Of a stretch of DNA of 64,000 nucleotides, positions 18,091 to 58,590 are shown in pieces. A program made the translations under genes and the position numbers. The DNA lies in the NCBI GenBank assembly GCA_040285825.1, contig JAUPSS010000006.1, positions 1,178,001-1,242,000 on the forward strand. The letters are read 5' to 3'. Source of the stretch: Eukaryota sp. TZLM1-RC (lineage: Eukaryota > Protista > Metamonada: BaSk clade). A model generated the notes under the pieces. The model searched no databases, was not told where the DNA came from, and worked only from the letters and a program-made list of their open reading frames with translations. Within the stretch, counting starts at the first letter, position 1, and every line of letters begins with the position of its first letter.

Positions 18091-19146
18091 ATGTCTTCAT
18101 CATCCTCAGACTTTTTTGATTCAGATTCAGATTCAGATTCATATGATGCTTTTGAAGTTGATGGACTCAAACTTTCAGCAAATTGGCTCTACCTTCATTC
18201 TGATTCGCCTCCTGGTCACTATGATATTCATCACCGTGGTCGTGGTGTTCAGTTCTCCTATGCTCAATCACTAAGCCCTGTGGATCGAGGTAGACCATAT
18301 AACTATTATGAGTTGGAAGTTATAGATGTCCCTCGTGATGGTCCTGATGGCTACGCAGCAGCCATTGGTCTAGTTCCTGAGCGGTATTCTTCAATACGTC
18401 TTCCTGGGTGGTCATCAAACTCCATCGCATATCATGGTGATGATGGCAAGGTTTTTATCAACAGCGGTCAGGGAGAGAGCCACGGATTTCCTTCTGCGAG
18501 ACCTGGGGATTCCATAGGGCTTTTACTTTACCAAAACAACGTGTATTTTTCTCACAATGGGAGGTTATTTAACCATGTTTCTTTCAACTGTTCATTACCC
18601 ACTTGCTATGCGGCCGCTGGACTCTCTGATGCTGGTGAACGTGTTATCTTCAAGACTAGCCCTCCATTTCGTTGTTCTCATGCCTCCATTCTTAGCTTCA
18701 TCACGCAGCTACCTGGTGGCTCTCTCCTACTTGGTCCAAATGAAGAACTTGAGGACCATTACGCACACGTGTTACAGAAAACACAACTTGATGAATTCAA
18801 GTGCATTATCTGCTTTTCAGTTGTTTCAAATGCTGTAGAGACCAATTGTTGTCACCAGCTGATCTGTGAAGCATGCTCTCGTCTGTCTTCATGTCCGCAT
18901 TGTCGTCACAAAAGGTTTCAATGTAGACCAAACTATCCAATAAGAAGAATGGTTGATGGGTTTGAGGTTATTTGCAGGCATTGTGAGGAACATGCTGTTT
19001 TGGGAGAGTTTCGTGGTCATTACACCCAATGCAAGAGTAGGCTATTGAAGTGTAAGGTATGCCAAGAAGGAGTATCAAGAGAAGAAGTCATTGATCACTT
19101 GGTTGGCAAACATGAAGATGATTTGGCTTGTTTATTTTTCAATTAG
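18091..19146 (+). CDS. SPRY domain - RING finger - zinc finger protein (putative E3 ligase)
   Basis: YYELEV, AIGLV, LPGWSSNSIAYHGDDG (RanBP9/10-type SPRY); CIICFSV...CCHQLICEAC...CPHCR RING; CxxC..H..C and CxxC..H...H fingers. Confidence 0.88.
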   Translation: MSSSSSDFFDSDSDSDSYDAFEVDGLKLSANWLYLHSDSPPGHYDIHHRGRGVQFSYAQSLSPVDRGRPYNYYELEVIDVPRDGPDGYAAAIGLVPERYSSIRLPGWSSNSIAYHGDDGKVFINSGQGESHGFPSARPGDSIGLLLYQNNVYFSHNGRLFNHVSFNCSLPTCYAAAGLSDAGERVIFKTSPPFRCSHASILSFITQLPGGSLLLGPNEELEDHYAHVLQKTQLDEFKCIICFSVVSNAVETNCCHQLICEACSRLSSCPHCRHKRFQCRPNYPIRRMVDGFEVICRHCEEHAVLGEFRGHYTQCKSRLLKCKVCQEGVSREEVIDHLVGKHEDDLACLFFN

Positions 19147-26200: not shown

Positions 26201-26904
26201 CTCACCATACGAGCTCATGTTTGGTTCAGATTTTAGCCCAAGAGCTGACCCCGGCAAAAATCATAGAGACCCTCGAAAGCTCAACGTCTGAATCAACCTA
26301 CATCAACAACATTCAATCCAAATTTGCCAGATTGAAGAAGAAACAGGAGGAAGCAGAGCTCCGTCAAGCTTCCAAGGCTCCTCCTCGTGATTCCCAAATC
26401 GAAGCCAACCCTTTCTCTCCTGGCCAATTGGTAAAACGAGCTTCGTCTTCCACTGCTAAGTTACATGGTAACTACAAAGGACCATTCTTAGTTATCGACA
26501 CACCCTCTACCTCCACAGCTGACATCAAGAACCTGTGTACTGGTATGGTTGTTAAAGCCAGTGTGAAGCACCTCCAACCTTGGCATTCCAGTTTACCAGT
26601 AGATGATGAATTTCACTCCTGGGTTGCTGCTGGCGATGCAGAAGAGCACGTGATCCAGAAAGTCCTCAGTCAGGATGGTGATTACTGTCAAGTCCAATGG
26701 CCTGGCAATCATATTACCACTGAGCTGGTTTCGACTGTTCAAAACACCTCTGCCTATAAAGAATTCTCCAAGTCTGTTTCTAATACTCGCTCTCGTCCTT
26801 CACGCCGTAAACGTCGTTCTGTTAATATTAACAATAATGTTAATCCAACTCCTATCAGGCCTCGACGCTCGAAAAGAAGAAAGGGCAGTGTTAGCCTTGG
26901 ATAA
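23185..26904 (+). CDS. pol: Pol polyprotein: aspartic protease, RT, RNase H, integrase with GPY/F motif and degenerate chromodomain (apparent frameshifts at homopolymers ~24277, 24497, 25180, 25437, 26258)
   Basis: IIDSGAS; LDLPKAFWQ, FGLKNVP, YIDDII; CDASDIAVG, ELYAI, TDH; HHCC finger, VDVIGP, HSDNGPEF, SNGLVER; YKGPF; HVIQKVL...VQWPG. Confidence 0.92.
26871..26888 (+). other. Polypurine tract
   Basis: GAAAAGAAGAAAGGGCAG immediately 5' of the 3' LTR. Confidence 0.85.
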
Positions 26905-27522: not shown

Positions 27523-29031
27523 CTAAATCCCTTTACTAGCCCATACAACAGAATTGGCAATCAACCTGTGACCATCAGTTGAGCTTTGCCAGCCAGCACC
27601 TGCAAGATCACTACTATAACAAAGACAACCAAACTCCACAATTCTACCGTGTCCTATTTCATTCTTTGCAATTAAAGGACTTCCATTGAACACAATTGCC
27701 AACAAGGTTCCATTGACAAGTTGGGCATCTTTACGAGCAGAAGGAACAGCAAAAGAGTTGACATTTGTGAATATTGGGTCGTTTGACTTTGTTTTAACAA
27801 TGTTTTGTTGTGATCCAAGTTCAGTAGAATTACCCCCACTAAAGCAAGAGTAATTAAACCATTGGGGGCTTGATGATGGATAGAAGTTGAACAATACCAA
27901 ACCTTTACCAGCTTCTAACAGCTGGTTGAGGTATTGGCCTGGACCTCGGACATGAGAAGGATCTAAAACCACAACATCAAAAGGTTCAAGTTGATTGTAA
28001 TTGTTGATGGCGTTACCACTTGAATTAATAACAACTTCTAAATCCCCCCAATTTTCAGTTAAACCTTTATTAAGCTTGGTGGTTAGGTCGTTGATGGTAG
28101 CTGAAAGAACCCAAACCCCAACACGAATCCTTCTTTTTCTGTTACCTCTGAAACCATTATCAACAGCATTGGACTGAACTCTGGATTGCACACCGCCGAA
28201 TTTAGCATTTCCAGCAACCCTATTGACCTTTTTCACCATGTCATTATACCTCTTCTGCATTCTATCCAAATGATCCTTTCCTTTTGAAATCATAGATGAA
28301 AGTTCAGCTTCGATATCAGGAACTTCAACATTGAGTGAAACCACTTGGCCAGAGTAGAAAACATCAGCGGTTGGTTCTCTGAAACAAGACTCAACAGAAG
28401 AAGTGAAGAGGGAAAGACATTGGGAGGAGGTTGTGTTTATGGATGCATTAACTTCATTGGTTACATTCTTGGCTTCATCAACGCACTGTTGGAGGTAATT
28501 GTTGAGAGTAGTGACCTTATCAGTATACCTTTCAATGGCTTGGACAAGAGGCATCATTTTCTCATGAGAGGAGTGGCCATCCAAAAGCGAACAATCTACA
28601 CAGACAGCAACAGAACATTGGGGGCAAAAGTACTCCAAAATCTTAGTTGGGTGCTTGGTACATTTGACAGGACCTAGTGAACGTTCTTCCATCGGAACAA
28701 CATGGTGATGGCTAAGAGCTCTACGATGGATATTGGATGAACAGGAGTCGCAGAACATGGCTACACATTCTTGGCAGACCACGGTGGCATTGGAAGAGTC
28801 ACATTCTTGGCACAGCTTTGACCTGGGTTGTTGATGTTGTTCAATGGCCTCGCGCATTTTGATGTTCTCGCGCAAGGTTCTGGCATCGACTGCTGCACGG
28901 CATTCCGGACAACTTCTACTGTACAGTAGAACCGGACGGAGACACCTTTCCAGACATGCACTATGTCCACAAGGGAGAGTACAAGGCTTTTCCATGATGT
29001 CAAGACATATCGCACAGTTCATCCATTCCAT
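27523..29031 (-). CDS. TRIM-like E3 ligase (RING-Bbox1-Bbox2-coiled coil) with the family C-terminal alpha/beta domain
   Basis: CAICLDIMEKPCTLPCGHSACLERC...CPECR; CQECD..CQEC..FCDSC..H...HH; CTKHP..YFCPQC..CVDC..H..H. First ATG at 29031. Confidence 0.9.
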   Translation of the reverse strand: MEWMNCAICLDIMEKPCTLPCGHSACLERCLRPVLLYSRSCPECRAAVDARTLRENIKMREAIEQHQQPRSKLCQECDSSNATVVCQECVAMFCDSCSSNIHRRALSHHHVVPMEERSLGPVKCTKHPTKILEYFCPQCSVAVCVDCSLLDGHSSHEKMMPLVQAIERYTDKVTTLNNYLQQCVDEAKNVTNEVNASINTTSSQCLSLFTSSVESCFREPTADVFYSGQVVSLNVEVPDIEAELSSMISKGKDHLDRMQKRYNDMVKKVNRVAGNAKFGGVQSRVQSNAVDNGFRGNRKRRIRVGVWVLSATINDLTTKLNKGLTENWGDLEVVINSSGNAINNYNQLEPFDVVVLDPSHVRGPGQYLNQLLEAGKGLVLFNFYPSSSPQWFNYSCFSGGNSTELGSQQNIVKTKSNDPIFTNVNSFAVPSARKDAQLVNGTLLAIVFNGSPLIAKNEIGHGRIVEFGCLCYSSDLAGAGWQSSTDGHRLIANSVVWASKGI

Positions 29032-30284
29032 TGTGCAGGATGATGGATAATCAAAATATTGAATGGACAATTATCAAACTTCAAATTGACATTTCTCGTC
29101 TGGATTTGGTAATTAACGAAGTTGTCAATGTCAACTGGTCACAATTGGTTCGAGTTCATGTATTCCATCTGGTTCCATAATCCAAACACTCCAACTTTGA
29201 CAATATAAACTTTGAGGGTTCAGTAATTAATAGCCTCCCATTATTTTATAAATACTGAATTCATTGTGTTTGTGTCAACTCTTCCTTTATTTCCGCTGTT
29301 TATTTTTAAAATAGATTTCAATAATTAGAAACGATATGGCCAGGATGAATGCATTAGACAAACACGATGCATGTTCCCAGCATCTCATTCTTATCTCCGT
29401 CCATCCGAATTGATTATACAACAGATCATTATAGGAAAAAGAATCTTTATAGACCAGAATTTTGATAAAAACAACAGCAAAAAGACATTTAAAAAAGTCA
29501 CACTTTCAGAGGCTAACAGTTCAACATGAATTTATTAATTATTTCTTGTACTTTTGACTTACAGTGATTTTTTGGGTTTCTCAGTGGATTTTTGTTGAAC
29601 TTTATGACTGGCTCGACTTTAATTGATTTCCATCATCCACGCAATTGAAAATTCTTTAAATTTTTGTTCTTAAATTCCTTTTTTGTTGTTTATTAAAATT
29701 TTGACGAACGGACCTAATCTTCATAGATAAAAGAATGGTTTTGTGTGAGGTCAGCTTGACTTTCTGAGTAGATGTGTTATTTGGAGTGTTATAAATTCAA
29801 CATCAATATTTTTTGATTTTTATTGATTTCTCAACCGTTTTCTGTCGTTTGGATTGATAATTTGTGATGGTTCTACTATGAGATCCTGTATGTGACTTTG
29901 GTGACTGTGGAACTTAAATTGTATCCTTAAAAACACAGCGTAAGCTCAAAACAAGCCAAAAACTAATCAATTATGGCTTTCAAGTGTTATTGTTATAACC
30001 CTCAACCATCAAGAAATTGATTGGATATTGGCCATTGTATTCAACACAGCGATGTACAGCTAGTTCAATTGGTAGCTTCAGCATTTTAAATACCAACTCC
30101 GTTAATCCTTGTAATTCTACTAACAAACATTTCACAAATTCTGATCGCACCTTTGACTTCCAGAATTTCAGTGAGCACTACTGGAATTCTTTAAGTAATT
30201 CATTAAGAATTTGAACTCCAATGGCATGATTCTAATGTAAATGATTTTCTTCTTGTTTGGGAAAATACAAAATGCTTTTTTATA

Positions 30285-30734: not shown

Positions 30735-32773
30735 CTAAATCCATTTACTAGCCAATACAATAGAATTGGCAAGCAACCTGTCACCATCAGTTGAGCTTTG
30801 CCAGCCATTACCACTATAATCACTACTCCAACAAGCACAACCAAACTCCACAATTCTACCTTGTACTATTTTATTCTTTGCAATTAAAGGACTTCCATTA
30901 GACACACTTGCCAACAAGGTTCCATTCACAAGTTGGGCATCTTGACGAGCATGAGGAACAGAAAAAGAGTTGACATTTGTGAATATTGGGTCATTTGACT
31001 TTGTTTTAACAATGTTTTGTTGTGATGAAAGATCAGCATCATTACCCCCCCTAAAGCAAGAGTAATTGAACCCTTGGGGGCTTCTTGATGGATTCCAGTT
31101 GAACAATACCAAACCTTTACCAGCTTCTAACAGCTGGTTGAGGTATTGGCCTGGACATCGGACATGGGCAGGATCAAAAACCACAACATCAAAGGGTAGA
31201 AGTTCATTGTAATTGTTGATGGCATTACCACTTGAATTAAAAACAACTTCTAAATCCTCCCAATTTTCAGTTAAACCTTTATTAAGCTTGGTAATTAGGT
31301 CGTTTATGGCACCTGAATAAACCCAAACCCCAACACTAATTTTGAACATCAATTCCCTTCCTAATAATTTTCTGGAAATTTCACCAATATTGTACCTTGA
31401 ACAATTCTTTTTAATTACCTTCTCCAACCATTCTTCTTTTCTTTTATTTAAAGAATTTGTTAAAGTAATATTTGATAATAAATTATTTGGAATAGTTGGT
31501 AATTCTGGAACTAATTCAAATGAATAATTATCAATAACCTTGCTTAATAACAAAGAATTAGAATGTTGAATTGCAAAATTAACAACATTAATAAATTCTT
31601 GATTGGAAAACCTGCCAAATTCCAATTTAGAAATAACTAAATCAAAATCAATATCAAAAACTAAATTTGATTCAAGGTTAAAGAGCCAAATAAAATCTGA
31701 AACATTAATTGATTTTGAATTATTAATAAAATTGGCAATTAATTATTGTTTTAATTCCAAGTCAACTTCAAGAGGAATTAATTCATCTATTTCATCTCTT
31801 AAAGGGACACAATCTTGACCAAATTGGGCAGCAAAGACAAGTTCTTGAGAACTTTTTGAAAAATTCAGCTTGTCAACATCAATCAATTCCTTTCCAAGTA
31901 ATTTCCTAATAAAGATAGCTTAAAACCAATAGTTTCAGATTCTAAATTATCAAAACAAGTAAATAAAGTAGTTTTAAATTCATCAAATACATTTTGAATC
32001 TTTTGAATCTCTTCCTGAGCTCTTTCCTTCACATTGCCATCAAAAGCAAGTGATTCTTCGACAGTTTTCGACGACTCTAGCTGCTGAAGCTTTAAACTAG
32101 ATTGTCTGATCAAATCACCAATCAAATCATGTAAAATTGATTGGGTTTGATTGAGGCTTTCCCTCACAACCGATTCTACTCTATCCCCTGATTGAGCCAA
32201 GGAGGGTGCAATAGTGGAAACTCTTGCTTGAAACTCATCCATTTGTTTGGCAAAGACTTCCTTGGCTTGTGAAAATGACACAAGAGCTTCATGGTGTTGA
32301 GAGTGGCCATGAGGCAAGCCACATGAATCGCACAAAGCAACCTTACACTTGGTGCAATAATGCTCGATTTCCTTGTTCTTGTGGTGAGGGCATTTGGGAA
32401 GGGAGACGTTGGATTTTTGTGAGAGAGGGACGACAGTGTGGTATTGAAGGGCCTTGAGGTTGTGGAGGAAAGAAGAGCAGTCGTGGCAGTAAGAATGATC
32501 ACAATCAGAGCAAAATAAACCAGCAGCAGCTTCTTCGCATTGAAAGCAGGGTTCAGCGGCAGGAGAGTGATGTGAGGAGGCTTCGATGATGTCGCGCAGT
32601 GTGATATTTATGCGATGACACATCAAGGGAATCTCCTCGCGGCATTGGGGACAGGAAGAACGTTGCTTCTTGGAGGGCAACAGACATCGATCACGACAGA
32701 AGCTATGACCACATGGGAGCGTAGTCGGTTGCTCCATGATCTGAAGGCATATTCCGCATTCTAGGTGAGACAT
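30735..32773 (-). pseudogene. TRIM-like paralog of 52503-54542 with a 1-bp loss (~31905, A-run) and an in-frame TAA (31743-31745)
   Basis: ORFs 31883-32773 and 30735-31625 align with the 679-aa paralog; CAA-TAA here vs CAA-AAA in the paralog. Confidence 0.85.
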
Positions 32774-33635: not shown

Positions 33636-36600
33636 TCTTTGACAATTTTTGTTGAAGCTTTTTACAGCAAAACTGTAAATTAAATAGAGATCGATCGGTT
33701 TGGAATTTCTTGAATTGATTGAGGAAAACATTTGGTCCAAATTTGTGGCGGTAATTTTTCAAGTTCACAAGATAACTCAAACAAATAGGGACTACAATTG
33801 GGGACTAACAGATGAGAATCATCAGGAAATCTACGAGAAAATTCATAAATAAAATTTTTGCAAATCTTTTACAAGATATGTGTGACAGTACTTCTTCTGC
33901 CTTAGTAACAACAATTCCACAAGTTTATGGTACTCTCTTATCCGATTCTGCTTGGACTCTGAATATGAGATTTCGTTCCTTTATCTGGCCTGATAATTTA
34001 CCTCATAATTTAATTTGTAAATGTTCTCGAGAAATTACAACTACTCATTTGTTAAATTGTAAACATTTTATTACTTTTAGAAGCAAGGTTCATGATGCTG
34101 TAAGAGACCAGTTATATTGTATGTGTAAATCTCATAGAATTGAATCCTTCTTGGAACCTTTGTTGTCAAATCTGTTTGATGCTGAAAATGATTTTCATAA
34201 GAATAATAGAGGTGATGTCATATTACCTGGATTAGATGGAAGCTTTATTTTATTGGATGTAATGTCTGTTGATCCTTGTAATGCCTCAAATGAAAGGCTT
34301 TTTAATTCTGAAATTGATAATCCCCTTTCAAATGCTGAAAATTTTAAATTCAAAAAATACAATGAACCTTTGTCCAAATTGGCCAGTCTACAGCATGCAA
34401 AATACAATTTGTATCCATTTATATTTTCCCTTTTTGGTTCACTTGCACCAACTGCTTTACGTTTTTTGGATGATTTTGAAATGATTGTAAAGAGAAGAAC
34501 TGGCAGAAATTTCAACAGGTTGTTTTGGCAAAATCTATTTAATTTATTGAATTTGCACACTTGATTAAATTAAATCATAACTAATGGGACGACTATCATT
34601 AAACCAAGATTTCCTCTACAAAATCTTGATTTGCTTGCTGTCTAGCTAAAGCTTCTCTAATTCGATTGAAAAACTGCGGTAATCTATTAATAATGGCAAA
34701 TTGAATCCGTGAACGCCATAAAAAAATATCAAATCTTTTCATTGTTTTTTCTTTCACCATTTTTTGGAAGTCATCCAAAAAAAGTTTCTGCTCAACTGAT
34801 AATCTTCCATTTATCGAAAATGGGAAAGCAATAAAAACCAGCTGTGTATTTCTATCGATATTTGCATCTTCAATTTCTTTATCATATTTTCTATGTTTTT
34901 CTTTTGCTTTAAAATCCAGAGCAGCCACAGGATTAAGTTTTCTTCTGTGAACCAAAGTATCGTTTGCAACATTACATGAGACAAAGTCAACAATAGCTTC
35001 AGAATTATCAATCCAATCACAGTATACATCACCTCTATCATCAGAACCAAAATTATTCAGAGAAAGTGTTTCTTTCAGCAGGGGCTCTTTGATACAAGAT
35101 ATCCTTGCAGTTTGTGCCATATTGAAAACAGTGTCTCTAACAGCATTATGTAATGAAGAACGATAAGTTATCAATTTAGAGCAATTTAGAGCATGGCGCA
35201 AAGTGAGTTGAGGTGAATTCGAACAAATACATTTTTCTTTTGATAATAATTGGTTAATGGGGATGTTCAAATATAATCTCATTTTTGTTACAAATGCTTC
35301 ATTAGTAGCACACAATCCAAATCTTCGTGGTTCAATGGTTACAAAAAGTGAAGAATCTGACACCTTGTTTTCACAAACACCCTTTTCCAATAACAATGAG
35401 TGAAGATCTTGATTTAAAACAGCCGAGCTGCAAATATTATTATAAAGATCTTTTTCATACATTCCAGTCAATCTTTTCTGTAATGTTCGAAGAGTATACT
35501 TCAAATTTAAAACATTTTTTTCTGGAATATTGCCATTGAATGATTGGGGAAAACATCGACCCCATTTTTCTACATCAATTCTTGAAATTTCTTCATTTAA
35601 TGCAAAAACAGTGGAACTTTGCGTTGTCATCAATAAATCTTCCCAATCTGCAAATCTTACGGAGAACTCAAAGATTGCATTTCTGCATCCACCAACAAAA
35701 GCACACGAGGTAAGAATAGAAGCCTTCGTCCACCCTAAACCACCATATTGTGGACTAAGGTAAGCATGATCTGGAATTTGAAACATTTTACATCCCAGTA
35801 ATTGAGACAGAACTTTTGTACGTAACTCATTAAACTTTTGAGCCAAAGGTCTAGTGACGAGAGGATTTGTAGATCGAAATATATGATTAAAATTGGAACT
35901 AAAACACAGTCTTATAATGGTAAATTTGATGTGTTTTTTTATATCTAAATTCATCATTCGGTCAATTTTGACAGAAATTGAGTTCAACTTTTCAAACAAT
36001 TTTTTGGTAATTTCATCATTATTTCCTAAAAACGAACCCAAATGACGAATAGCATCAATTGAATATAATTTGGCTTGAATTTCAATATCATCAATTATTG
36101 TGGAAACTGGAGAATTCGATAACAAAACACATTTAAGTAAATTAAGTCGGAGACCAATTTTGGTAAATAATTCTTTAAAACATACAGTTGCTTTTTTCAC
36201 AATATTTAAATCACCAATAAGCACAACATCATCCATATATGCAATCATTTTTAGTGAAGGAAACATCTCTTGAATTTGCAGTAGAATAGGATGAATGGCC
36301 AAACAAAACAAAAGAGGTCCTAACGGATCTCCTTGCTTTACGCCACTTGATGAAATCAAAATGTTGTTCCCAAAATGTAAATTAGAATATGTGCAATATG
36401 TTGATTGAAAATATGGTATTAATTCTGGCATATATTGCAATAAAGCACCATGGATACTGCAACGACTTAGCGAATTGAAAGCATTACTAAAATCCAATGA
36501 CATGCAAACATTGGATTCATTTTGACGAAATAAGACATCAGTAGCAAAAATCGCTGAAGAGACTCCATCTGTAGTATTTATACCATATTGAAAGGGTAAT

Positions 36601-37025
36601 AAAATCTTTTTAGCTTTTTCATTGAACCTGCTTAAGCAACACGCAGAAAAAATATTATGTAAGCTCTCAGAGACTGCAATAGGACGAACATCCATTTTTG
36701 AATTTTTGACAAGTGCAGTCAAACGAGAACTTCTTAATTCTTCTGGGTACTTGCGTTGACCAGATAATATTTGGTTGAAAAATTTGGTCAATAAACCAAG
36801 GCAATCTTCTGAAGAAACAATCGCGGCTTTTACATGATCAATAGGCAAATTTGGCAAAATAGAATAGTGTTTTCTATTTTTAAGGGGATGTTGAAGATGG
36901 TTTCTGATGCTTTGCTTTCTCTTGGATCTCACTATGAGAGAGTTGCATCTAGTGTTTTTGTTTTGGGAGAGATGGATTTTTTGGATGTTGATTTATAGGT
37001 TTAGAATATAATTAAATTTAAAAAA
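33636..37025 (+). mobile_element. 5'-inverted, truncated family B insertion (inverted 33636-33861; sense 33856-34534 and 36850-37025), poly(A), 12-bp TSD AATTTCAGTACT
   Basis: TSD at 33624-33635 and 37026-37037. The inverted part is the reverse complement of 63521-63742 and the sense part matches from 63801. The ORF resumes as WQNRIVFSIFKGM...DVDL* after 36850. Confidence 0.92.
34535..36849 (-). mobile_element. 5'-truncated CRE-like non-LTR family A element (open RT + RLE frame) nested in family B, 11-bp TSD TTTGGCAAAAT
   Basis: DVRPIAVSE, LDFSNAFN, GVKQGDPLGPLLF, AYMDD, CICS..HALNC, DRGD..D..KEKHRKY; TSD 34524-34534 / 36850-36860. Confidence 0.94.
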
Positions 37026-39207: not shown

Positions 39208-41259
39208 TTAAACACATTCACCACACCAAGCAACAGCATTGGCTATTAATAAATGACCATCAGATGAGGCATGCCAGTTGCCTGCATGTGCATGGATGTC
39301 ACTGCTGAGAGAAAAGAAGCCAAATTCAACTAATCTACCACTAGCAACAATCTTCTTGGCAATTAAAGGAGTACCGTTATTGATAGTAGCAACCACAGTT
39401 CCACTGGTGAAGTTTGCGCTTATTCTCCCAGCATTTGAAGAAAAAGAACTGACATTTTTAAGTAAAGGATCATCAGGAAGTGTTGGAGTCATGGTGACGT
39501 AATTTTCTCTTGATTGTTGATAAAAGTTGAACTGTCCTCCATCAAAACAAGAGTAATTAAAACCATTTGCTGGCTGAGCATTGAACAAAACCAAACCTTT
39601 TCCTGATTCAAGTATTTGGTTAAGAAAAGAAGCTGTCCACCTCATGCTATAAGTCTCCACAACAACAACATCAAAAGCACTCAATTCATTGAAATTGTTT
39701 ACTTCCCGACCTGGACTAATTGAAATCTCAACGTGATTCCAATTCTGATTAAATCCTTTTCTAAGCATGGAAACTATATCATCTAGATAATTATCCCCAG
39801 TAGAACAGTAAACCCCAACATTAAGCCTTTTAAAACAAACTTCCCTTCCCAATAACCTTTTAGAAACTTCTCTAATATTACCTTGATTACAACTAACATT
39901 TACCACCTTCTCCAACCAAACTTCCTTATTACCATCAACAACATTAGAAAGGGTCAAATTAGAAAGGAAATCGACAGGAATTTCAACGACTTCTGGTAAT
40001 GATTGGAATTGGTAATTGTCGATAACTTTGACTATCAAATCAGTTAAGGAGTGGCTAATTCCAAAATTTAAAATATTGGTGAATTCTTCTTGACCTAAAT
40101 CCCCAAAATCAATTTTGTTGGTAATAGATTTTATCTCTGCAATGTTGAGAAATTCGGAAAATTGAAGAAGCCAAATAAAATCAATTGATTTAATTACCCT
40201 AGATTGAGCAAAAAATAATGAAATTGTTTTTGATTTTAAATCATTAGGAATTTCACAAGAAAGAATTTCCCCAATAATTTCCCTATTAATGGTACAAATA
40301 GAATCAAATTGCACTGCCATGAGGACCTCTTGAGCTCTTTTCGAAATATTAAAGCTGCTGACATCTACAAAATCTTGATTGAGTAATTTTCTAAATAAAG
40401 TCAATTTGAAATTTTTGGTAAAATTCTCAATATTTTGAAAGCTTTCTAACCAAATATTTTGGTATTCTTGCAAAATATCAATAGCATTTCCTACACATTC
40501 AATACCTTTTTCCTTCAATTGTCCATCAATCAAGAGATTTTCATCAAAAACCTCACCACAATCAATTTGATTGATTAGGGTAGCTGATTGTCTGATCAAA
40601 TCAGCAATCAAATCATTCAAAATTGATTGACCAGTCGAAAGAGTTTCCTTGACCACTTGGTCAACTCTTTCGGTTGGTTCGGGTAAGCTAAGCGTACACG
40701 TGCTCAATGCTTCCTGCAATGTCTTCACCTCCTCAGTGACAGCTTCCTTGGCATCGAGAAGAGGGATCAATTGCTGGTTGTGGGCAGCGTGACCTTCCAA
40801 TAGACCACAAGAATCACAGATTGCTACCTTGCATTGGGTACAGAAGTACTCCAGGTTCTTGGTCTTATGGCGAGGACACTTGACGGAGGCTAGGGAGGCT
40901 TTCTTTTCGAGAGGGACGATGTTGTGGTTCTTTAGCAATCTATGTTCATGAAGTTGAGATGAGCATTCTTGGCAGAGAACACCATCACATTGCTCGCAGA
41001 AGAGAGTGGCATCGGCTTGAAGACAGTCATTGCAGACGGGTGATTCCTTTGGTTTCTGGTTGAGAGCATCGATCGCCTCGATTAGGGCTATGTTGATTGA
41101 GAGAGTTTGTTGGGAGACGTTTTTGCGACAGGAGGGACATGTGGAGTTGGACTTCAACCATTTAGAGAGACATTTAGTTCGACAAAAGCTATGACCACAA
41201 GTAAGGGTTGTGGGTTCTTCCATTGTTTTAAGACATATGCCACATTCAAGAAGACTCAT
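39208..41259 (-). CDS. TRIM-like E3 ligase (RING-Bbox-Bbox-coiled coil-helical-C-terminal alpha/beta domain), divergent paralog
   Basis: CGICLKTMEEPTTLTCGHSFC...CPSCR, two B-boxes, FDVVVV..LESGKGLVLFN..GRLVEFG..DGHLLIANAVAW. Confidence 0.92.
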   Translation of the reverse strand: MSLLECGICLKTMEEPTTLTCGHSFCRTKCLSKWLKSNSTCPSCRKNVSQQTLSINIALIEAIDALNQKPKESPVCNDCLQADATLFCEQCDGVLCQECSSQLHEHRLLKNHNIVPLEKKASLASVKCPRHKTKNLEYFCTQCKVAICDSCGLLEGHAAHNQQLIPLLDAKEAVTEEVKTLQEALSTCTLSLPEPTERVDQVVKETLSTGQSILNDLIADLIRQSATLINQIDCGEVFDENLLIDGQLKEKGIECVGNAIDILQEYQNIWLESFQNIENFTKNFKLTLFRKLLNQDFVDVSSFNISKRAQEVLMAVQFDSICTINREIIGEILSCEIPNDLKSKTISLFFAQSRVIKSIDFIWLLQFSEFLNIAEIKSITNKIDFGDLGQEEFTNILNFGISHSLTDLIVKVIDNYQFQSLPEVVEIPVDFLSNLTLSNVVDGNKEVWLEKVVNVSCNQGNIREVSKRLLGREVCFKRLNVGVYCSTGDNYLDDIVSMLRKGFNQNWNHVEISISPGREVNNFNELSAFDVVVVETYSMRWTASFLNQILESGKGLVLFNAQPANGFNYSCFDGGQFNFYQQSRENYVTMTPTLPDDPLLKNVSSFSSNAGRISANFTSGTVVATINNGTPLIAKKIVASGRLVEFGFFSLSSDIHAHAGNWHASSDGHLLIANAVAWCGECV

Positions 41260-43894: not shown

Positions 43895-46800
43895 TTATTT
43901 ATTTATTTATTTATATAAAGAATCAAATAAAAACAAAACAAACTAAAACACATAAGAAACTAAATTCTCCACGCCAACTCTTGATGAATCCTTATAAAGT
44001 TTAGACATCATTAAACTTAAGTACTTCGGAACACTTCTGTACAAAGCGAAAATGATACGATTTTTCCATAAATTCTCTGCAAAATTCTTACCACTTGAAC
44101 GACATAAATTACCAAAATCATTGATGAAATTCAAGGCGGATTGTCCAATGTTGCCAAAAATCGAAAAGGCAAAAGGAACAAACGAAAACTTCGAATAAAG
44201 GTTCTTATTTAAATCATTTAATATCTCGGTATATTTATCTCTCTTACGATCTTCAGCCTTGTTTAAATGACCATTAGTACTAAGTAAAACATCATCGCGA
44301 TAAACAAAAGCAAAGGGATCAACTGTAGTGAAATCAACAACAACTTGAGAGGAATCCACAAAAGGAGCAATTAAATCACCTCGACGTGAATTAAAAAGAT
44401 TATCATCACTATAATGCTTCAACAAAGGTTCTACTTTGCAACTAAAATTGTAACACTTGAACATCTCATATGTCACATCACGAACGGCATTATGAAGAAC
44501 TGACCTATATTGGAGAAATTTCTTACAGCTCACAATATGACGAAAATTGGCAGTAGGTTTTTTGTTACAAATACAATAAGAATTGTCCAAAAGACCACTT
44601 GGATACATCCCTAATCTCAACCGCATGTTTTGTTTCCAAGCTTCATTTGTTAAGTGAAGACCAAATGGCCTTGGTTGCTGAGATATTAAACTAGTACAGT
44701 TCTGAATGTCTGATAAAAAGGCAGCAAAGACGGGATTATTAATCTTAGTCACACTAAGTCGTTTAGAAAAATCCAGGTCTTCAAAACCAATAAGAACAGA
44801 CTTCTGTAATTTCACAACAGCAAGATGAAGGTTGGTGAAAGATCTCGAAGGCACAGCAGGCAAACTTGAAGGAAAACTCCTATTCCAAATATCAACAGGT
44901 AGTTCTTGCACCATTTTTTTCAAGAGAAATTAATAAAGGATGTGATTCATTTAAAGGAATATGATCAAAACGAAGTTTCCATTCAAAAAGAAAATTTTTC
45001 ATACCACCAATAAAAGCACTTTTGCATAAATACTCTGCTTTTGAAAAACCAACTCCACCAAATTTAGGACTAAAAAATGCATGATAAGGAATTTTAGATG
45101 GACAAACTTCTACTAAATTTCCTAAGAAATTTGTTCTCAAAGTATTGAATTGACGTGCAAAATCATGAGAAATTGTGGGAGATAAAGAACGAAGAAGATG
45201 ATTAATTTTTGATCCAAAACACACATTGAGGACCGAAAACGCTAAATGTTTGTCAATTTCTAGATCTTGAATAGCCAAAAGTTGCTCTTCGATTTTCTCC
45301 AAAATACCTGACAAAATCGATTTAACTTTTTCACTATTTCCAAAATAAGATCCAAGAAACCGAATAGCATCTTCCTCGTAATCAACGTATTTGATAAAAG
45401 TTTCTTTAAATGCCACCTCCGCATGCTGATTACCAATAATGAAACACTTGGGCAATTTAATGTCTAACCCTATTTCTTTGGCCAGAAAAACAAAATGTTG
45501 TAAACCGTGTTGTAAAAGAGACAAAGGGCCAATAAGTGATAAATCATCTGCATAAGCACATATATGAATGTCAGGAAAATCCGACTTAAATTTTACCAAA
45601 ACTGATTGCAGTGCTAGGCAAAAGAAAAATGGACCCAATGGATCCCCTTGTTTGACCCCTCTTGACGAAACAATATTCTCAGAATGAAAAATTAAGTTAG
45701 AGGGTGATCCATACATCAATTTAAAATACGGCAAAAGTGGAGGATAGTGTAGTTCAAGTTCTTGCAAAATACTGGAGCGAAAAACGGAGTTGAAAGCATT
45801 TTTAAAATCAATGTTCAATAAATAATTTTCGCCTTTTTGATTGAAAAGTAAATCTGTACACAACGCAGCACATGTTGTGCCATCAGGAATTCCGATAGCA
45901 AACTGATAAGGACGAAAATAATTAATTGCGGATGACTTAACTCTTTTAAAAGAAATAATTGCTAATAATCTCATTATGGACTCACCAACAGCAATAGGTC
46001 TGACACCACCTCCAGGCTTATTTAAAGCAACTAAACGAGATGCCATTAACGCTTGTGGTAACTTGAAACGTCCCATGATGACACTATTAAAAAAGAAAAC
46101 TAAATCATCCACGATTTCTGGACATATGTTGACTGCGGACTTTAAATGATCATAACTAAGTCCAGAAGGCCCAGCAGAACGACCAGACGGAAGTCCTTTA
46201 ATAGCTACACTAACTTCATCACAAGTGATAGGATTAGCAGTGAAGAAATCACGTTCATTATCAGAGACGATGTGATTTATGGTGAAGTCTTCAGGTGGAT
46301 GAAGAGAATTTAAACAATCCAATGTTTCATCATTGAAGGCAGCAGGAGAAGAACCAGCCAATAATTTAAGTGCTGAAGAGTATTGTGAACGAAGAATCAA
46401 AGACTCAAAGCGTTTTTTGACATTTTTAAATTGTGGAACCGACTTCTTATATTTAGATTTCTTGTGTGAAGACATAGCCTTAGAAAGAAAAAATTTCCAA
46501 AAAATCGAAGGATTCCAAATGCCCTTTCGAAGAGAGAAGGTTAAAGATCGAATAACTGTTGCAAGAGAAGACGAATGAGCAGGAGAAACGAATTGAGGGA
46601 TTGCAAATGGAGGTCTACAAGGATCAATTGGCGTGCAAGAATCACAAACCAAAAGAGGTCGACCCGAAACATTGAATCCAGAAACTGGAGAACAACAGAA
46701 CAAACATGATTTTGTATTACTACTGACTGAAGACGAATGAAGTATATGTGGAGGCTCAATAGACTCAATAGGTGAAGATAATGATGCCAATACAGCTTCA

Positions 46801-46956
46801 TCTGACAAAACTTTTCGCTGAGGACATGTTGTTTTTGTGTGACCAACAGTTTTGCACAAAGAACAGGTAGTCACAGAATTCTTAGGGCGTCCTCTAGAAG
46901 GTTTTGAAGTAACTGGTTTCGGAGGCATAGATAAGCATGGAGGGAGAAAAAAAAAT
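43895..46956 (-). mobile_element. Apparently full-length CRE-like non-LTR retrotransposon family C (~3.06 kb), (TAAA)n tail, 13-bp TSD TATAACTAAATAT
   Basis: TSD 43882-43894 / 46957-46969; 28-nt 5' UTR; single ORF 46928-43943 with one frameshift in a T/A run at ~44917. Confidence 0.93.
43943..46928 (-). CDS. Family C protein (~995 aa): AT-hook, CCHC knuckle, C4 finger, RT, CCHC finger + restriction-like endonuclease
   Basis: RGRPK; CSLCKTVGHTKTTC; SAGPSG; GVRPIAVGE; GVKQGDPLGP; AYADD; CICNK..HIVSC; RRGDL..VDFT..AEDRKRDKY. Confidence 0.9.
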
Positions 46957-52502: not shown

Positions 52503-54542
52503 ATGTCTCACCTAGAATGCGGAATATGCCTTCAGATCATGGAGCAACCGACTACGCTCCCATGTGGTCATAACTTCTGTCGTGATCGATGTCTGTTGCC
52601 CTCCAAGAAGCAACGTTCTTCCTGTCCCCAATGCCGCGAGGAGATTCCCTCGATGTGTCACCGCATAAATATCACACTGCGCGACATCATCGAAGCCTCC
52701 TCACAGCACTCTTCTCTCTCTGAACCTTGCTTTCAATGCGAAGAAGCTCCTGCTACTTTATTTTGCTCTGATTGCGATCATTCTTACTGCCACGAATGCT
52801 CCTCCTTCATTCACAAAATCAAGGCATTTCAATCCCACACCGTCGTCCCTCTCTCACAAAAATCCAACGTCTCCCTTCCCAAATGTCCTCACCACAAGAA
52901 CAAGGAAATCGAACATTATTGCACCAAGTGTAAGGTTGCTTTGTGCGATTCCTGTGGCTTGCTTCATGGCCACTCTCAACACCATGAAGCTCTTGTGTCA
53001 TTTTCACAAGCCAAGGAAGCCTTTGCCAAACAAATGGAAGAGTTTCAGGTTAAAGTTTCCACTATTACCCCCTCTTTGGCTCAATCAGGGGATAGAGTAG
53101 AATCGGTTGTGAGGGAAAGCCTCAATCAAACCCAATCAATTTTACATGATTTGATTGGTGATTTGATCACACAATCTGGTTTAAAGCTTCAGCAGCTAGA
53201 GTCGTCGAAAACTGTTGAAGAATCACTTGCTTTTGATGGCAATGTGAAGGAAAGAGCTCAGGAAGAGATTCAAAAGATTCAAAATGTATTTGATGAATTT
53301 AAAACTACTTTATTTACTTGTTTTGATAATTTAGAATCTGAAACTATTGGTTTTAAGCTATCTTTATTAGGAAAATTACTAGGCAAGGAATTGATTGATG
53401 TTGACAAGCTGAATATTTCAAAAAGAGCTCAAGAACTTGTCTTTGCTGCCCAAATTGGTCAAGATTGTGTTCCTTTAAGTGATGAAATTGATGAATTAAT
53501 TCCTCTTGAAATTGACTTGCAATTAAAACAAAAATTAATTACCATTTTTATCAATAATTCAAAATCAATTAATGTTTCAGATTTTATTTGGCTCTTTAAC
53601 CTTGAATCAAATTTAGTTTCTGATGTTGATTTTGATTTAGTTATTTCTAAATTGGAATTTGGTAGGTTTTCCAATCACGAATTTATTAATGTTGTTGATT
53701 TTGCAATTCAACATTCTAATTCTTTGTTATTAAGCAAGGTTATTGATAATTATTCATTTGAATTAGTTCCAGAATTACCAACTATTCCAAGTAATTTATT
53801 ATCAAATATTACTTTAACTAATTCTTTAAATAAAAGAAAAGAAGAATGGTTGGAGAAGGTAATTAAAAAGAATTGTTCAAGGGACAATATTGGTGAAATT
53901 TCCAGAAATTTATTAGGAAGGGAACTGATGTTCAAAACAATTAGTGTTGGGGTTTGGGTTCATTCAAGTGTCATAAACGACCTAACCACCAAGCTTAATA
54001 AAGGTTTAACTGAAAATTGGGGGGATTTAGAAGTTGTTATTAATACAAGTGGTAATGCCATCAACAATTACAATCAACTTCTACCTTTTGATGTGGTGGT
54101 TTTAGATCCTTACAATGTCCTTTGTCCAGGCCAATACCTCAACCAGCTGTTAGAAGCTGGTAAAGGTTTGGTATTGTTCAACTCTTCATCATCAAGGTCC
54201 CAAGGGTTTAATTACTCTTGCTTTAGTGGGGGTAATTGGACTAACCTTGGATCACAACAAAACATTGTTAAAACAAAGTCAAATGACCCAATATTCGCAA
54301 ATGTCAACTCTTTTGCTGTTCCAAGGGCTCGTAAAGATGCCCAACTTGTCAATGGAACCTTGTTGGCAAGTGTGTCTAATGGAAGTCCTTTAATTGCAAA
54401 GAATGAAATAGGTCAAGGTAGAATGGTGGAGTTTGATTGTTATGAATGGAGTAGTGATTTTGATGGTAATGGCTGGCAAAGCTCAACTGATGGTCACAGG
54501 TTGATTGCCAATTCTATTGTATGGGCTAGTAAAGGGATTTAG
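52503..54542 (+). CDS. Intact TRIM-like E3 ligase (RING-Bbox-Bbox-coiled coil-helical-C-terminal alpha/beta domain), 679 aa
   Basis: CGICLQIMEQPTTLPCGHNFC...CPQCR; two B-boxes; C-terminal domain shared with the paralogs. Confidence 0.93.
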   Translation: MSHLECGICLQIMEQPTTLPCGHNFCRDRCLLPSKKQRSSCPQCREEIPSMCHRINITLRDIIEASSQHSSLSEPCFQCEEAPATLFCSDCDHSYCHECSSFIHKIKAFQSHTVVPLSQKSNVSLPKCPHHKNKEIEHYCTKCKVALCDSCGLLHGHSQHHEALVSFSQAKEAFAKQMEEFQVKVSTITPSLAQSGDRVESVVRESLNQTQSILHDLIGDLITQSGLKLQQLESSKTVEESLAFDGNVKERAQEEIQKIQNVFDEFKTTLFTCFDNLESETIGFKLSLLGKLLGKELIDVDKLNISKRAQELVFAAQIGQDCVPLSDEIDELIPLEIDLQLKQKLITIFINNSKSINVSDFIWLFNLESNLVSDVDFDLVISKLEFGRFSNHEFINVVDFAIQHSNSLLLSKVIDNYSFELVPELPTIPSNLLSNITLTNSLNKRKEEWLEKVIKKNCSRDNIGEISRNLLGRELMFKTISVGVWVHSSVINDLTTKLNKGLTENWGDLEVVINTSGNAINNYNQLLPFDVVVLDPYNVLCPGQYLNQLLEAGKGLVLFNSSSSRSQGFNYSCFSGGNWTNLGSQQNIVKTKSNDPIFANVNSFAVPRARKDAQLVNGTLLASVSNGSPLIAKNEIGQGRMVEFDCYEWSSDFDGNGWQSSTDGHRLIANSIVWASKGI

Positions 54543-55097: not shown

Positions 55098-55185
55098 GAC
55101 CGTTGGAAGCCATTGAGAGAAAAAGATTTCACCTTTGGGGTTTTGTAAATAACAAAAAATACAAAAAAAAACAAAAATGCATTGA

Positions 55186-55551
55186 ATATCTATTTAACAA
55201 ATTCTGTAAATCAACGAAAAGAAGAATGGTTGGAGAAGGTAATTAAAAAGAATTGTTCAAGTGACAATATTGGTGAAATTTCCAGAAAATTATTAGTAAG
55301 GAATTGACAATCAAAAAAATTAGTGTTGGGGTTTGGGTTGATTCAACTACCATAAACGACCTAACTACCAAGCTTAATATAGGTTTAACTGAAAATTGGG
55401 GGGATTTAGAAGTTGTTATTAATTCAAGTGGTAATGCCATCAACAATTACAATCAACTTGAACCTTTTGATGTTGTGGTTTTAGATCCTTGCAATGTCCC
55501 TTGTCCAGGCCAATACCTCAACCTGCTGTTGAAAATTGGGGGGATTTAGAA
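55186..55551 (+). pseudogene. Promoterless partial copy of the TRIM C-terminal variable domain
   Basis: Matches 53805-54151 but carries its own residues at the variable sites; ends with a re-copied 21-mer (55391-55411 repeated at 55531-55551). Confidence 0.85.
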
Positions 55552-56003: not shown

Positions 56004-56474
56004 ATGGACCTACACCTCACAAGACTTGTTCAAGAACATAAAGCATGGAAGCGCAACCATCCACCGGGCTTCATTGCTCGTCCACAAAAACTGGCTGATG
56101 GCAGTCTCAATCTCATGCGTTGGCAGTGTAAAATCCCAGGACCCCCAGACACAATATGGGAAGGTGGCATGCTCCCTGTAGTCATGGAGTTCTCCTCAGA
56201 TTATCCACAAATGCCACCCAAATGTCGGTTCGACCCTCCTCTCTGCCATCCCAACATTTTCCCATCTGGTACTGTTTGTTTGTCACTCTTGGCAGAAGGA
56301 AAGCAATGGAGACCCTCGCTGCGTGTGAAGGATATACTGCTAGGGATTCAGCAGTTGTTAGAGGGCGTGAACATTGATGATCCTGCTAATGAAAAGGGTT
56401 TGTTGTTGTACATTCATGACCAAGAAAAGTACAAGGAACAGATTCGAGAGTATGTTCGCCAGCATTCTCACTAG
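56004..56474 (+). CDS. UBC9: SUMO-conjugating enzyme E2
   Basis: RLVQEHKAWKRNHPPGFIARP..ADGSLNLMRWQCKIPG..T.WEGG; HPNIFPSGTVCLS. Confidence 0.92.
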   Translation: MDLHLTRLVQEHKAWKRNHPPGFIARPQKLADGSLNLMRWQCKIPGPPDTIWEGGMLPVVMEFSSDYPQMPPKCRFDPPLCHPNIFPSGTVCLSLLAEGKQWRPSLRVKDILLGIQQLLEGVNIDDPANEKGLLLYIHDQEKYKEQIREYVRQHSH

Positions 56475-57486: not shown

Positions 57487-58590
57487 CTAAAACAAGGGAC
57501 ACAAACCAATTTCAGAACATACATCAAAATCACCATCTTTTGCAAACACCAGCAACCTTTCTAATTCTGCAATCAGATTCAAGCACCATTTACTACCAGC
57601 ACCTCCTCTTGAAGAACACATCATCCTAGTGGTTGCAGATGCCATCTCCATGTCGCTCTCCCCATGACCCTTCACCATGTCAACCAAACCCCTACATGTC
57701 TCGCACATTGGCCAATAGTTGATGGAGCATTGTTTCTCCCTGCATAGACGAATGACGTGACAGATGAGTTCAGGAGGGAAGGCTCGGAGTAAAAGGGCGA
57801 TTATCTCGTCAATAGAGTCTGATAGCATTCGTTCGCAGCTAGGTCTAAAAGCAAGAGGAACAGTCTCACAGACGTCACTCAACCACTTCTCAATCTCTTC
57901 TCGTGTGGTTTCATCGTCTAGCTTGTCCTCAATGGCACGCATGACAAAGACGCAGACGGAGCATTTGGTAGAGTGGTCATTGTTGTCGTGGGGGTTTTGG
58001 AGGTTTTGTGGTTTGGAAACACATGTGCCAGTGAAGTGGCAAACAAAATCAGGAGAAAGACCTGATTTGAGGAGATCAATGATGATTTTACCGTATTGAT
58101 CAACCCAAACATGACAGGATTGAGACCAAGAAGGAGAGGGTAACATATCGCAGGTCTTCCCAACAAAATCGATGATGTGCTCCTCAGAGTCTTCTAGCTT
58201 GGAGTAGATCAACTGCACAAGCCATTTACACAGACTACAGGCAGGAGAGTTGGAGTCTGAGGGAGAAGAAAGAGACTTATCAAATTCCATTAGACACAAA
58301 CCTAATGGATCTTTTTCTGTTTTCATCAGAGTCACTAGCTCCAAACGATGCTGCATTGCTTCTGGAGAACACAGCAGATGATCTGGGTCTTCTCTGCATT
58401 CGATTTGAATTAAGTCAAGATAGTGAGAGTCAGTCTTGACTATTAAGGATTCAGTTCTAGCTATGACGCCTTTGGTTAGTAAAGTTGAGTGAAACATACG
58501 ATTCACAAATGATTCACATTGGTTAATATCAGTTGGTTCTGTTGCCACAACCACAACCAGCACAATGCACAGGACTACAACAAGCTTCAT
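57487..58590 (-). CDS. Prosaposin-like secreted protein with several saposin-B domains
   Basis: Signal peptide; CSLCKWLV...C...C..VDQYG.....C...C and CSVCVFVM...C...C...PELICHVIRLC saposin patterns. Confidence 0.9.
   Translation of the reverse strand: MKLVVVLCIVLVVVVATEPTDINQCESFVNRMFHSTLLTKGVIARTESLIVKTDSHYLDLIQIECREDPDHLLCSPEAMQHRLELVTLMKTEKDPLGLCLMEFDKSLSSPSDSNSPACSLCKWLVQLIYSKLEDSEEHIIDFVGKTCDMLPSPSWSQSCHVWVDQYGKIIIDLLKSGLSPDFVCHFTGTCVSKPQNLQNPHDNNDHSTKCSVCVFVMRAIEDKLDDETTREEIEKWLSDVCETVPLAFRPSCERMLSDSIDEIIALLLRAFPPELICHVIRLCREKQCSINYWPMCETCRGLVDMVKGHGESDMEMASATTRMMCSSRGGAGSKWCLNLIAELERLLVFAKDGDFDVCSEIGLCPLF

Follow-up and report, generated by a model that had tools for sequence, protein, structure and literature searches.

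Cell-autonomous immunity in animals is characterised by families of ubiquitin ligases with a rapidly diversifying recognition domain (TRIM5, finTRIM), and plants and nematodes probably have counterparts (F-box and MATH-BTB proteins); TRIM-type proteins tend to be regarded as having expanded in animals, and we know of almost nothing comparable described for free-living protists. The F-box and MATH-BTB adaptor families of nematodes and plants are large and lineage-specific, have been proposed to target pathogen proteins, and are reportedly under positive selection in their substrate-binding domain only (Thomas 2006, Genome Res; see also PMC3030570). The finTRIM proteins of fish and the TRIM5alpha and TRIM22 proteins of primates are RBCC (RING, B-box, coiled-coil) ligases whose B30.2/PRY-SPRY sensor is under diversifying selection (PMC2657112, PMC3845644), with 16-17 selected sites located in the B30.2 loops of finTRIM by models M2a and M8 (PMC2657112). 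Outside animals only single TRIM37-like genes have been reported, e.g. in Dictyostelium (PMC5758549). Here we describe, from a stretch of 64,000 nucleotides of the genome of Eukaryota sp. TZLM1-RC (contig JAUPSS010000006.1, positions 1,178,001 to 1,242,000; the whole stretch is hereafter called the window), a family of TRIM-like genes whose C-terminal domain combines a nearly frozen framework with seven hypervariable, positively selected loops. With moderate confidence we interpret this domain as a non-catalytic sensor with a class I glutamine amidotransferase-like (GATase1-like) fold which, on its TRIM-like E3 scaffold, would form a diversifying repertoire for substrate recognition, likely directed against fast-evolving non-self proteins.

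TZLM1-RC is the metamonad Skoliomonas litria, a free-living anaerobe from a soda lake that feeds on bacteria (PMC11603281), and its genome is a Nanopore assembly with polishing by 206x Illumina data (PMC11316075). The window was assigned to it through protein names in database matches. The close family consists of 11 paralogs, three of them in the window (genes A, B and C), and one fragment (D); the eight further paralogs, found by database search on three other contigs, are all intact, and the DNA of each was retrieved. The analysis covers these 11 genes and three genes of a second subfamily rather than a whole-genome census, and the family so far stands at 11 close copies and about 10 more distant ones. 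The members in the window and the parts of gene C are as follows (ORF, open reading frame; aa, amino acids).

27523-29070, minus strand: gene A, a TRIM-like ORF of 515 aa
30735-32773, minus strand: gene B, a copy of the C type in two ORFs, 31883-32773 (5′ half) and 30735-31625
39208-41259, minus strand: gene E, an intact TRIM-like gene of 683 aa, second subfamily, same architecture
52503-54542, plus strand: gene C, an intact TRIM-like ORF of 679 aa
53940-54539, plus strand: sensor domain of gene C, class I GATase-like/ThuA-like, DUF7408
55185-55540, plus strand: fragment D, truncated and frameshifted, the end of the middle domain and sensor residues 1-74, loop variants of its own
Gene C by residue: RING 5-45; B-box1 75-117; B-box2 ~126-160; long helices 167-293; helical middle domain ~300-478; sensor 480-679

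An earlier note on this DNA, made from the sequence alone, had drawn attention to four copies of the C-terminal domain that are nearly identical in DNA over long stretches and differ in short patches, often at two or three bases per codon. The ORFs and the alignment bear this out: copies A, B, C and D lie where they had been placed, and every patch string quoted from them is found in the alignment. Between A and the other copies, DNA identity is 93-96% in the sensor framework and 58-73% in the patches. Codon pairs differing at two or three bases account for 654 of 1956 in the patches as against 121 of 9075 in the framework in pairwise comparisons of the 11 copies, a combination that is far beyond chance (p ~1e-30 in the likelihood-ratio test of site models). 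The eight paralogs outside the window vary at the same patches in the 11-copy alignment, a small additional patch at domain residue 40 brings the total to seven, and the second subfamily, i.e. gene E and two genes on another contig, varies at the same loops. The loops nevertheless keep their length, with single-codon insertions or deletions only, and 10 of the 11 copies are free of stop codons; residues S9, P57 and S171-S172-D173 are fixed as anchors within them, and Ser, Asn, Tyr, Gly, Asp and Trp are frequent at the selected positions.

Selection was assessed with our own GY94 site models (F3x4) rather than with PAML, branch lengths being fixed in proportion to the M0 fit. Gene B was counted in the domain-only data set, and its middle and C-terminal values were excluded from the full-length pairwise table. 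At the patches, the ratio of nonsynonymous to synonymous divergence (dN/dS, or omega) is well above 1 both in pairwise estimates and in site models. By the Nei-Gojobori method, the 37 contiguous patch codons have a dN of 0.53 and a dS of 0.25, and the 165 framework codons a dN of 0.042 and a dS of 0.090. For the sensor domain, twice the log-likelihood difference is 136 between M1a and M2a (p = 3e-30), 153 between M7 and M8 and 135 between M8a and M8, with M2a placing 13.7% of the sensor sites at an omega of 6.6. Since the family recombines, the test was repeated on thirds of the domain, each with its own tree, and all three were significant (p = 3e-9, 2.5e-14 and 3e-9). Nineteen sites reach a posterior above 0.95 (naive empirical Bayes), namely domain residues 8, 10, 11, 40, 58, 61, 82, 84, 85, 99-102, 129, 168, 169, 174, 175 and 177, and all of them lie in loops or at strand ends. 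Neither the RBCC part (omega 0.16, p = 0.41) nor the middle part (omega 0.31, p = 0.21) gives a signal of positive selection, both showing purifying selection only. The second subfamily, with three genes only, gives p = 0.026 for M2a in the sensor domain and no signal elsewhere. A separate observation concerns codons 91-110 of gene C in the first B-box (52773-52832), which have the highest proportion of synonymous differences (pS, ~0.7) in the gene and a raised proportion of nonsynonymous ones (pN, 0.25), as do the same codons in gene E; omega above 1 was not significant for these codons.

In the long-form genes pS is 0.2-0.6 over the first ~235 codons and 0.02-0.15 thereafter, a drop of about five-fold past codon ~240, and the internal branch that separates locus L006 and gene C from the rest measures 0.267 in the N-terminal tree and 0.015 in the middle-domain tree. 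Gene A shares with B and C only the sensor domain (27526-28128) and some 200 nt of 3′ untranslated region (UTR), at ~95% identity, with the similarity starting exactly at the start of the sensor domain; it lacks the long middle domain, and where its N-terminal stretch aligns with that of C, the RBCC parts of the two genes are only 39% identical. That gene A shares this 3′ part despite so different an RBCC region, together with the near-erased split in the trees, indicates that the 3′ module is being homogenised, and judging from these sequence comparisons the 3′ two-thirds of the genes are most likely homogenised by gene conversion. Homogenisation also means that the loops may be older than the local dS suggests, for which reason the 5′ dS was taken as a second yardstick. 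Relative to the local 3′ framework dS, patch dN amounts to 7.0 (bootstrap 95% confidence interval (CI) 4.5-10.9), and relative to the un-homogenised 5′ dS to 1.49 (CI 1.03-2.15), both from seven genes of one subgroup. The loop variants themselves are mosaic cassettes shared between otherwise different paralogs on different contigs: loop 1 is common to fragment D and L006, which lie on different contigs, and is identical in DNA, loop 2 is common to L001a and L002, loop 3 to gene A and L004, and part of loop 6 to gene A and L006.

The earlier note had also guessed at a class I GATase/ThuA-like fold with patches that follow predicted beta-strands, and both points proved right. The sensor domain alone matches DUF7408 (PF24157) with 31.5 bits (cut-off 27), and among 48 relatives collected by an exhaustive profile-free search 20 match DUF7408 and 11 match ThuA in Pfam. 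With these 48 relatives as the input alignment, AlphaFold2 (AF2) gave a model of the domain with a predicted local distance difference test score (pLDDT) of 96 and a predicted template modelling score of 0.93. The best Foldseek match of this model is the ThuA-like protein 1t0b (E = 6e-8), which ranks ahead of other GATase1-like proteins and of HisH. A search of Protein Data Bank chains with the single domain sequence gave nothing useful, and a profile gave weak ThuA-like matches only. Structural alignment with VIA-align ranks the neighbours as listed below, the alignments with the top four (2gk3, 3soz, 3rht and 1t0b) covering 182-185 residues at 2.4-2.7 A.

Z 19.3: 2gk3, uncharacterised GATase1-like protein
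Z 18.8: 3soz, uncharacterised GATase1-like protein
Z 18.6: 3rht, GATase1-like protein
Z 17.1: 1t0b, ThuA-like protein
Z 14.7: 5fmr, GIFT domain of IFT52
Z 12.7-14.2: the true amidotransferase subunits HisH, TrpG, PabA and GuaA

In the DSSP string of the AF2 model, the selected sites fall directly after strands b1-b4, at the start of the hairpin 99-111, in strand 126-132 and in the loop that strand 160-165 leads into. Parallel sheets of the doubly wound type have their post-strand loops gathered on one edge, which in the enzymes bears the active site. By this rule, which concerns the C-terminal ends of parallel strands, it follows from established topology that the post-strand loops of the model would lie on one face; that sites 99-102 and 129 belong to the same face is a guess.

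The N-terminal part has the architecture of a TRIM protein, with a RING and two B-boxes followed by long helices (Pfam and AF2 secondary structure), which suggests that the genes encode TRIM-like E3 ubiquitin ligases. The RING of the gene C type is recognised by Pfam zf-RING_2 (30.8 bits, cut-off 27.3) and zf-C3HC4 (26.2 bits, cut-off 21), its Cys/His zinc ligands are invariant in all 14 sequences, and the spacing C26-x3-C30 is one residue longer than the usual x2. The B-box (PF00643) scores 47-49 bits in two stretches, 75-117 and ~126-160, in every copy. The paralogs at L001, L003, L005 and L007 (9965-10000) are annotated as proteins of 667-668 aa starting from an internal Met, and their ORFs extend 12 codons upstream to MSHLECGIC..., supplying the first two cysteines of the RING; since these codons complete the RING, the public models of the four genes appear truncated. 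In gene B, one A is missing from a run of four at 31885-31900 (minus strand; the A-run lies near 31890-31897), where C reads GGAAAATT and B reads GGAAATT; this deletion splits the gene, which may be a pseudogene or reflect a homopolymer error of the Nanopore-based assembly. Gene E is 40-44% identical to C and 77-78% identical to P0013 and P0161 on another contig.

The middle domain (~300-478) is confidently all-helical in the full-length AF2 model but of no assigned kind, a protein-atlas search having given no match. A copy of it with 45% identity lies at L006:1858-2307 (plus strand), in or just after a BTB gene (L006:1-1909), and P0018 joins a BTB domain to the sensor domain, from which the middle and sensor module seems portable between E3 types. 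Within S. litria, the sensor domain is found in this BTB fusion, in RING-only proteins (P0020, P0025), with a protein kinase (P0024) and alone (P0016, P0017, P0026); TRIM-like fusions also occur in Skoliomonas sp. GEM-RC1 (P0011, P0160), and a cluster of BTB-BACK proteins in the ESM-Atlas has the same fold (template modelling score 0.84). Since RING proteins and BTB proteins alike are components of ubiquitin ligases, these fusions support a sensor that serves as a substrate-recognition module.

Taken as a working model, the C-terminal GATase1-like/ThuA-like (DUF7408) module would be non-catalytic and would pick the substrate of the ligase. Gene conversion would keep the scaffold of this module, the helical middle domain and the 3′ UTR near-identical among paralogs, while diversifying selection would drive seven loops apart (after b1-b4, in the hairpin, in one strand and after the last strand, covering the former nucleophile and His/Glu positions), the variants being swapped between paralogs as cassettes. 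The outcome would be a set of ligases that share a constant effector part but present many different binding surfaces, a repertoire most likely used to bind non-self proteins (of viruses, retroelements, or intracellular or prey bacteria) that would then be ubiquitinated. A role in defence is a suggestion drawn from the evolutionary pattern only. Several points weigh against this model. The putative coiled-coil region consists of low-confidence AF2 helices (167-191, 196-233 and 246-293, pLDDT <50 in the full-length model), and most paralogs outside the window sit among ordinary genes and not beside retroelements. The strictest neutral yardstick leaves a modest excess, with a lower CI bound of 1.03, and the set of 19 sites was picked for its variability. 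Recombination, which is clearly present, inflates codon site models, a concern that per-segment trees and tree-free pairwise estimates lessen but do not remove. Synonymous diversity at invariant residues, finally, is 0.226 at no more than two codons from selected sites, 0.096 at 3-6 codons and 0.050 beyond six; such a rise is expected if selection shields old loop alleles from conversion, and a local mutational process fits it equally well.

It could be that the loops are simply unconstrained and that the framework evolves in concert, with conversion tracts halting at diverged, neutrally drifting loops of old paralogs and no positive selection involved. The 5′ region, with a dS of 0.3-0.5, does show that the genes are far older than the 3′ framework implies, synonymous diversity is raised beside the patches, and patch dN exceeds the 5′ dS by a factor of only 1.49. 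However, the interval of this ratio stays above 1 though the patch definition includes invariant residues, and in the nine pairs of lowest 5′ pS (0.17-0.24) the 19 sites already have a pN of 0.31-0.68; across pairs, pN at these sites is weakly correlated with 5′ pS (r = 0.36). These two observations make pure drift of unconstrained loops unlikely as far as sequence comparison goes, and the preserved loop length, the lack of stops in 10 of 11 copies, the fixed anchors (S9, P57, S171-S172-D173) and the variation of the same loops in the second subfamily likewise speak against it. We regard this explanation as improbable, though it deserves to be taken seriously.

Another possibility, which we also think unlikely, is that the diversified recognition concerns endogenous or ecological targets (self/non-self, mating, substrate sorting, prey molecules, possibly glycans) and not immunity. 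The next relatives of the sensor domain are prokaryotic, comprising extracellular multi-domain proteins with Ig-like (immunoglobulin-like) and dockerin modules, BatA-type membrane proteins and PEP-CTERM proteins. The closest relative outside the skoliomonads (L010:8001-13550) is a protein of 1849 aa that combines several DUF7408/ThuA-like domains with many Ig-like/ASH domains and has a dockerin at its C-terminus; its gene is flanked by compact metabolic genes on the same strand, as is typical of a bacterial contig. This bacterial-type surrounding suggests a bacterial source of the sensor domain, and such an origin is plausible from the sequence relationships. The extracellular, modular character of these relatives would suit a role outside immunity, as would the presence of domains of glycoside hydrolases and other carbohydrate-acting enzymes among the structural neighbours, the bacterivorous habit of S. 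litria (PMC11603281), and the fact that the surroundings of the paralog loci revealed no consistent linkage to mobile elements. On the other hand, an omega of 6-7 at a few loop sites on a frozen scaffold is typical of arms races, and housekeeping sorting of substrates would normally place each paralog under purifying selection.

Diversification could also be driven by mutation, through a programmed or error-prone process acting on the loops, e.g. templated conversion from fragments such as D, with selection merely filtering the products. Identical cassettes in different paralogs on different contigs, one of them the promoterless fragment D, would fit such a process, and so would the raised pS around the loops and the common multi-base codon differences in the patches. 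Ordinary ectopic conversion explains the cassette sharing equally well, however, and only one fragment was found in the ~260 kb inspected. Diversity-generating retroelements (DGRs) confine the variation of their targets to the adenines of a template repeat and depend on a dedicated reverse transcriptase (RT). Here, all four bases occur at the same variable codon positions, no copy has adenines at all of them, and the RTs of the window are of the retrotransposon type, so that mutagenesis of the DGR type was rejected; we consider a mutational driver in general very improbable.

In class I amidotransferases, the elbow that follows strand 4 carries the Cys nucleophile, and the last strand is followed by a His-Glu pair. 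Over domain positions 79-87 and 165-180, the paralogs and 41 distant relatives have no conserved Cys, His or Glu, and the former nucleophile-elbow and His/Glu positions are among the hypervariable ones. That the domain is an enzyme after all (an amidotransferase, or a ThuA-type sugar-processing enzyme) whose loops tune the specificity of a pocket would suit its ThuA/GATase1-like fold and Pfam relatives and the strongly conserved S-S-D...W...S-T-D-G motif beside the last variable loop, but with no triad conserved, the elbow itself hypervariable and the best structural matches uncharacterised or non-catalytic (2gk3, 3soz, 3rht, the IFT52 GIFT domain and a subunit of oligosaccharyltransferase (OST)), we reject the catalytic reading as hardly credible.

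A non-catalytic recognition module on a TRIM-like ligase is the reading that we prefer. None of the three outcomes that the earlier note named as contrary to its idea was obtained, namely a dN/dS of 1 or less at the patches, variable sites scattered or buried in the fold (judged here by topology only) and a known enzyme domain with an intact catalytic site. A more elaborate version of it, which we put forward only tentatively, is that of a germline-encoded combinatorial repertoire, in which a bacterial-type domain, probably acquired by gene transfer, would serve as an antibody-like scaffold with seven loops on TRIM, BTB and kinase effectors, and conversion would shuffle the cassettes, including those from fragments.

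The rest of the window contains the following features.

1977-3743, plus strand: protein kinase containing leucine-rich repeats
7445-10852, minus strand: MMPL/RND-type transporter
13891-15249, minus strand: histone deacetylase
25263-26291: integrase-like ORF
34599-36932 and 44892-46928: RT ORFs

The earlier note had described the family as embedded among active retroelements. RT ORFs are indeed frequent in the window, but the link to the family is weak, since most paralogs elsewhere lie among ordinary genes; an association with retroelements holds in the window only, fails at most other loci and was discarded as a feature of the family. A ubiquitin-conjugating enzyme (E2; PF00179, 130 bits) is encoded at 56004-56474 (plus strand), 1.5 kb downstream of gene C, and is possibly a mere neighbour. 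A SPRY domain followed by a weak RING match at 18091-19146 (plus strand) may represent another E3 with a recognition domain, and SPRY genes are also present near the TRIM-like paralogs at L002, L004 and L007. The protein encoded at 57487-58590 (minus strand) looks secreted and contains several saposin B domains (SapB_1/SapB_2), saposin B being the fold of amoebapore-type antimicrobial proteins.

If the preferred reading is true, the evolutionary logic of the animal systems would be found again in a metamonad, with a sensor fold that had never been linked to recognition, was apparently borrowed from bacteria and is re-used on three other effector types within the S. litria genome. On the more elaborate version, the domain would be a new immune-receptor scaffold, and a deep-branching protist would have invented the strategy of TRIM5 and finTRIM independently. 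The family is in addition a clear case in which concerted evolution and diversifying selection operate within a few codons of each other. Because the frozen scaffold is so cleanly set off from some 19 fast sites, the system lends itself to experimental tests, and the sensor domain is a candidate natural binding scaffold. The genome paper has no 'ubiquitin', 'B-box' or 'ThuA' in its text, and the matches to 'trim' shown were names of software and the like (PMC11316075); no mention of DUF7408 was found in the literature searched.

Among non-catalytic eukaryotic domains of the GATase1-like fold, the sensor resembles the GIFT domain of IFT52 (5fmr) and the ribophorin-type subunit of OST (6s7t chain G), both with Z of 14-15. 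These two serve as binding modules without catalysis, but they belong to single-copy, conserved housekeeping proteins that show no diversification. With the prokaryotic ThuA-like, DUF7408 and BatA-associated domains the sensor shares the fold, the DUF7408 match, the scaffold motifs and the lack of an amidotransferase triad; the prokaryotic proteins differ in being stand-alone, membrane-anchored or extracellular and multi-domain, and we know of none that belongs to an E3 or serves as a module of hypervariable recognition. Positive selection is confined to the substrate-binding domain, as in the F-box and MATH-BTB families, and here the sensor is also joined to BTB; in contrast to them, the RING is in the same chain, the sensor fold is different and the family is smaller so far. 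The closest parallel is with finTRIM and TRIM5alpha, from which the metamonad family differs in having an alpha/beta GATase1-like (DUF7408/ThuA-like) sensor instead of a beta-sandwich SPRY domain, an extra helical domain of 180 aa between putative coiled coil and sensor, a unicellular host, and an extreme homogenisation of the scaffold (framework dS 0.065 versus a 5′ dS of 0.30). The evolutionary pattern is that of antiviral TRIMs of animals, though the metamonad family is not known to be antiviral. In common with finTRIM and TRIM5alpha, it is a clustered multigene family that recombines within itself and has an RBCC-like effector part under purifying selection, and like finTRIM it carries a C-terminal recognition domain in which a conserved scaffold bears a few hypervariable loops, with 19 selected sites here and 16-17 in finTRIM.

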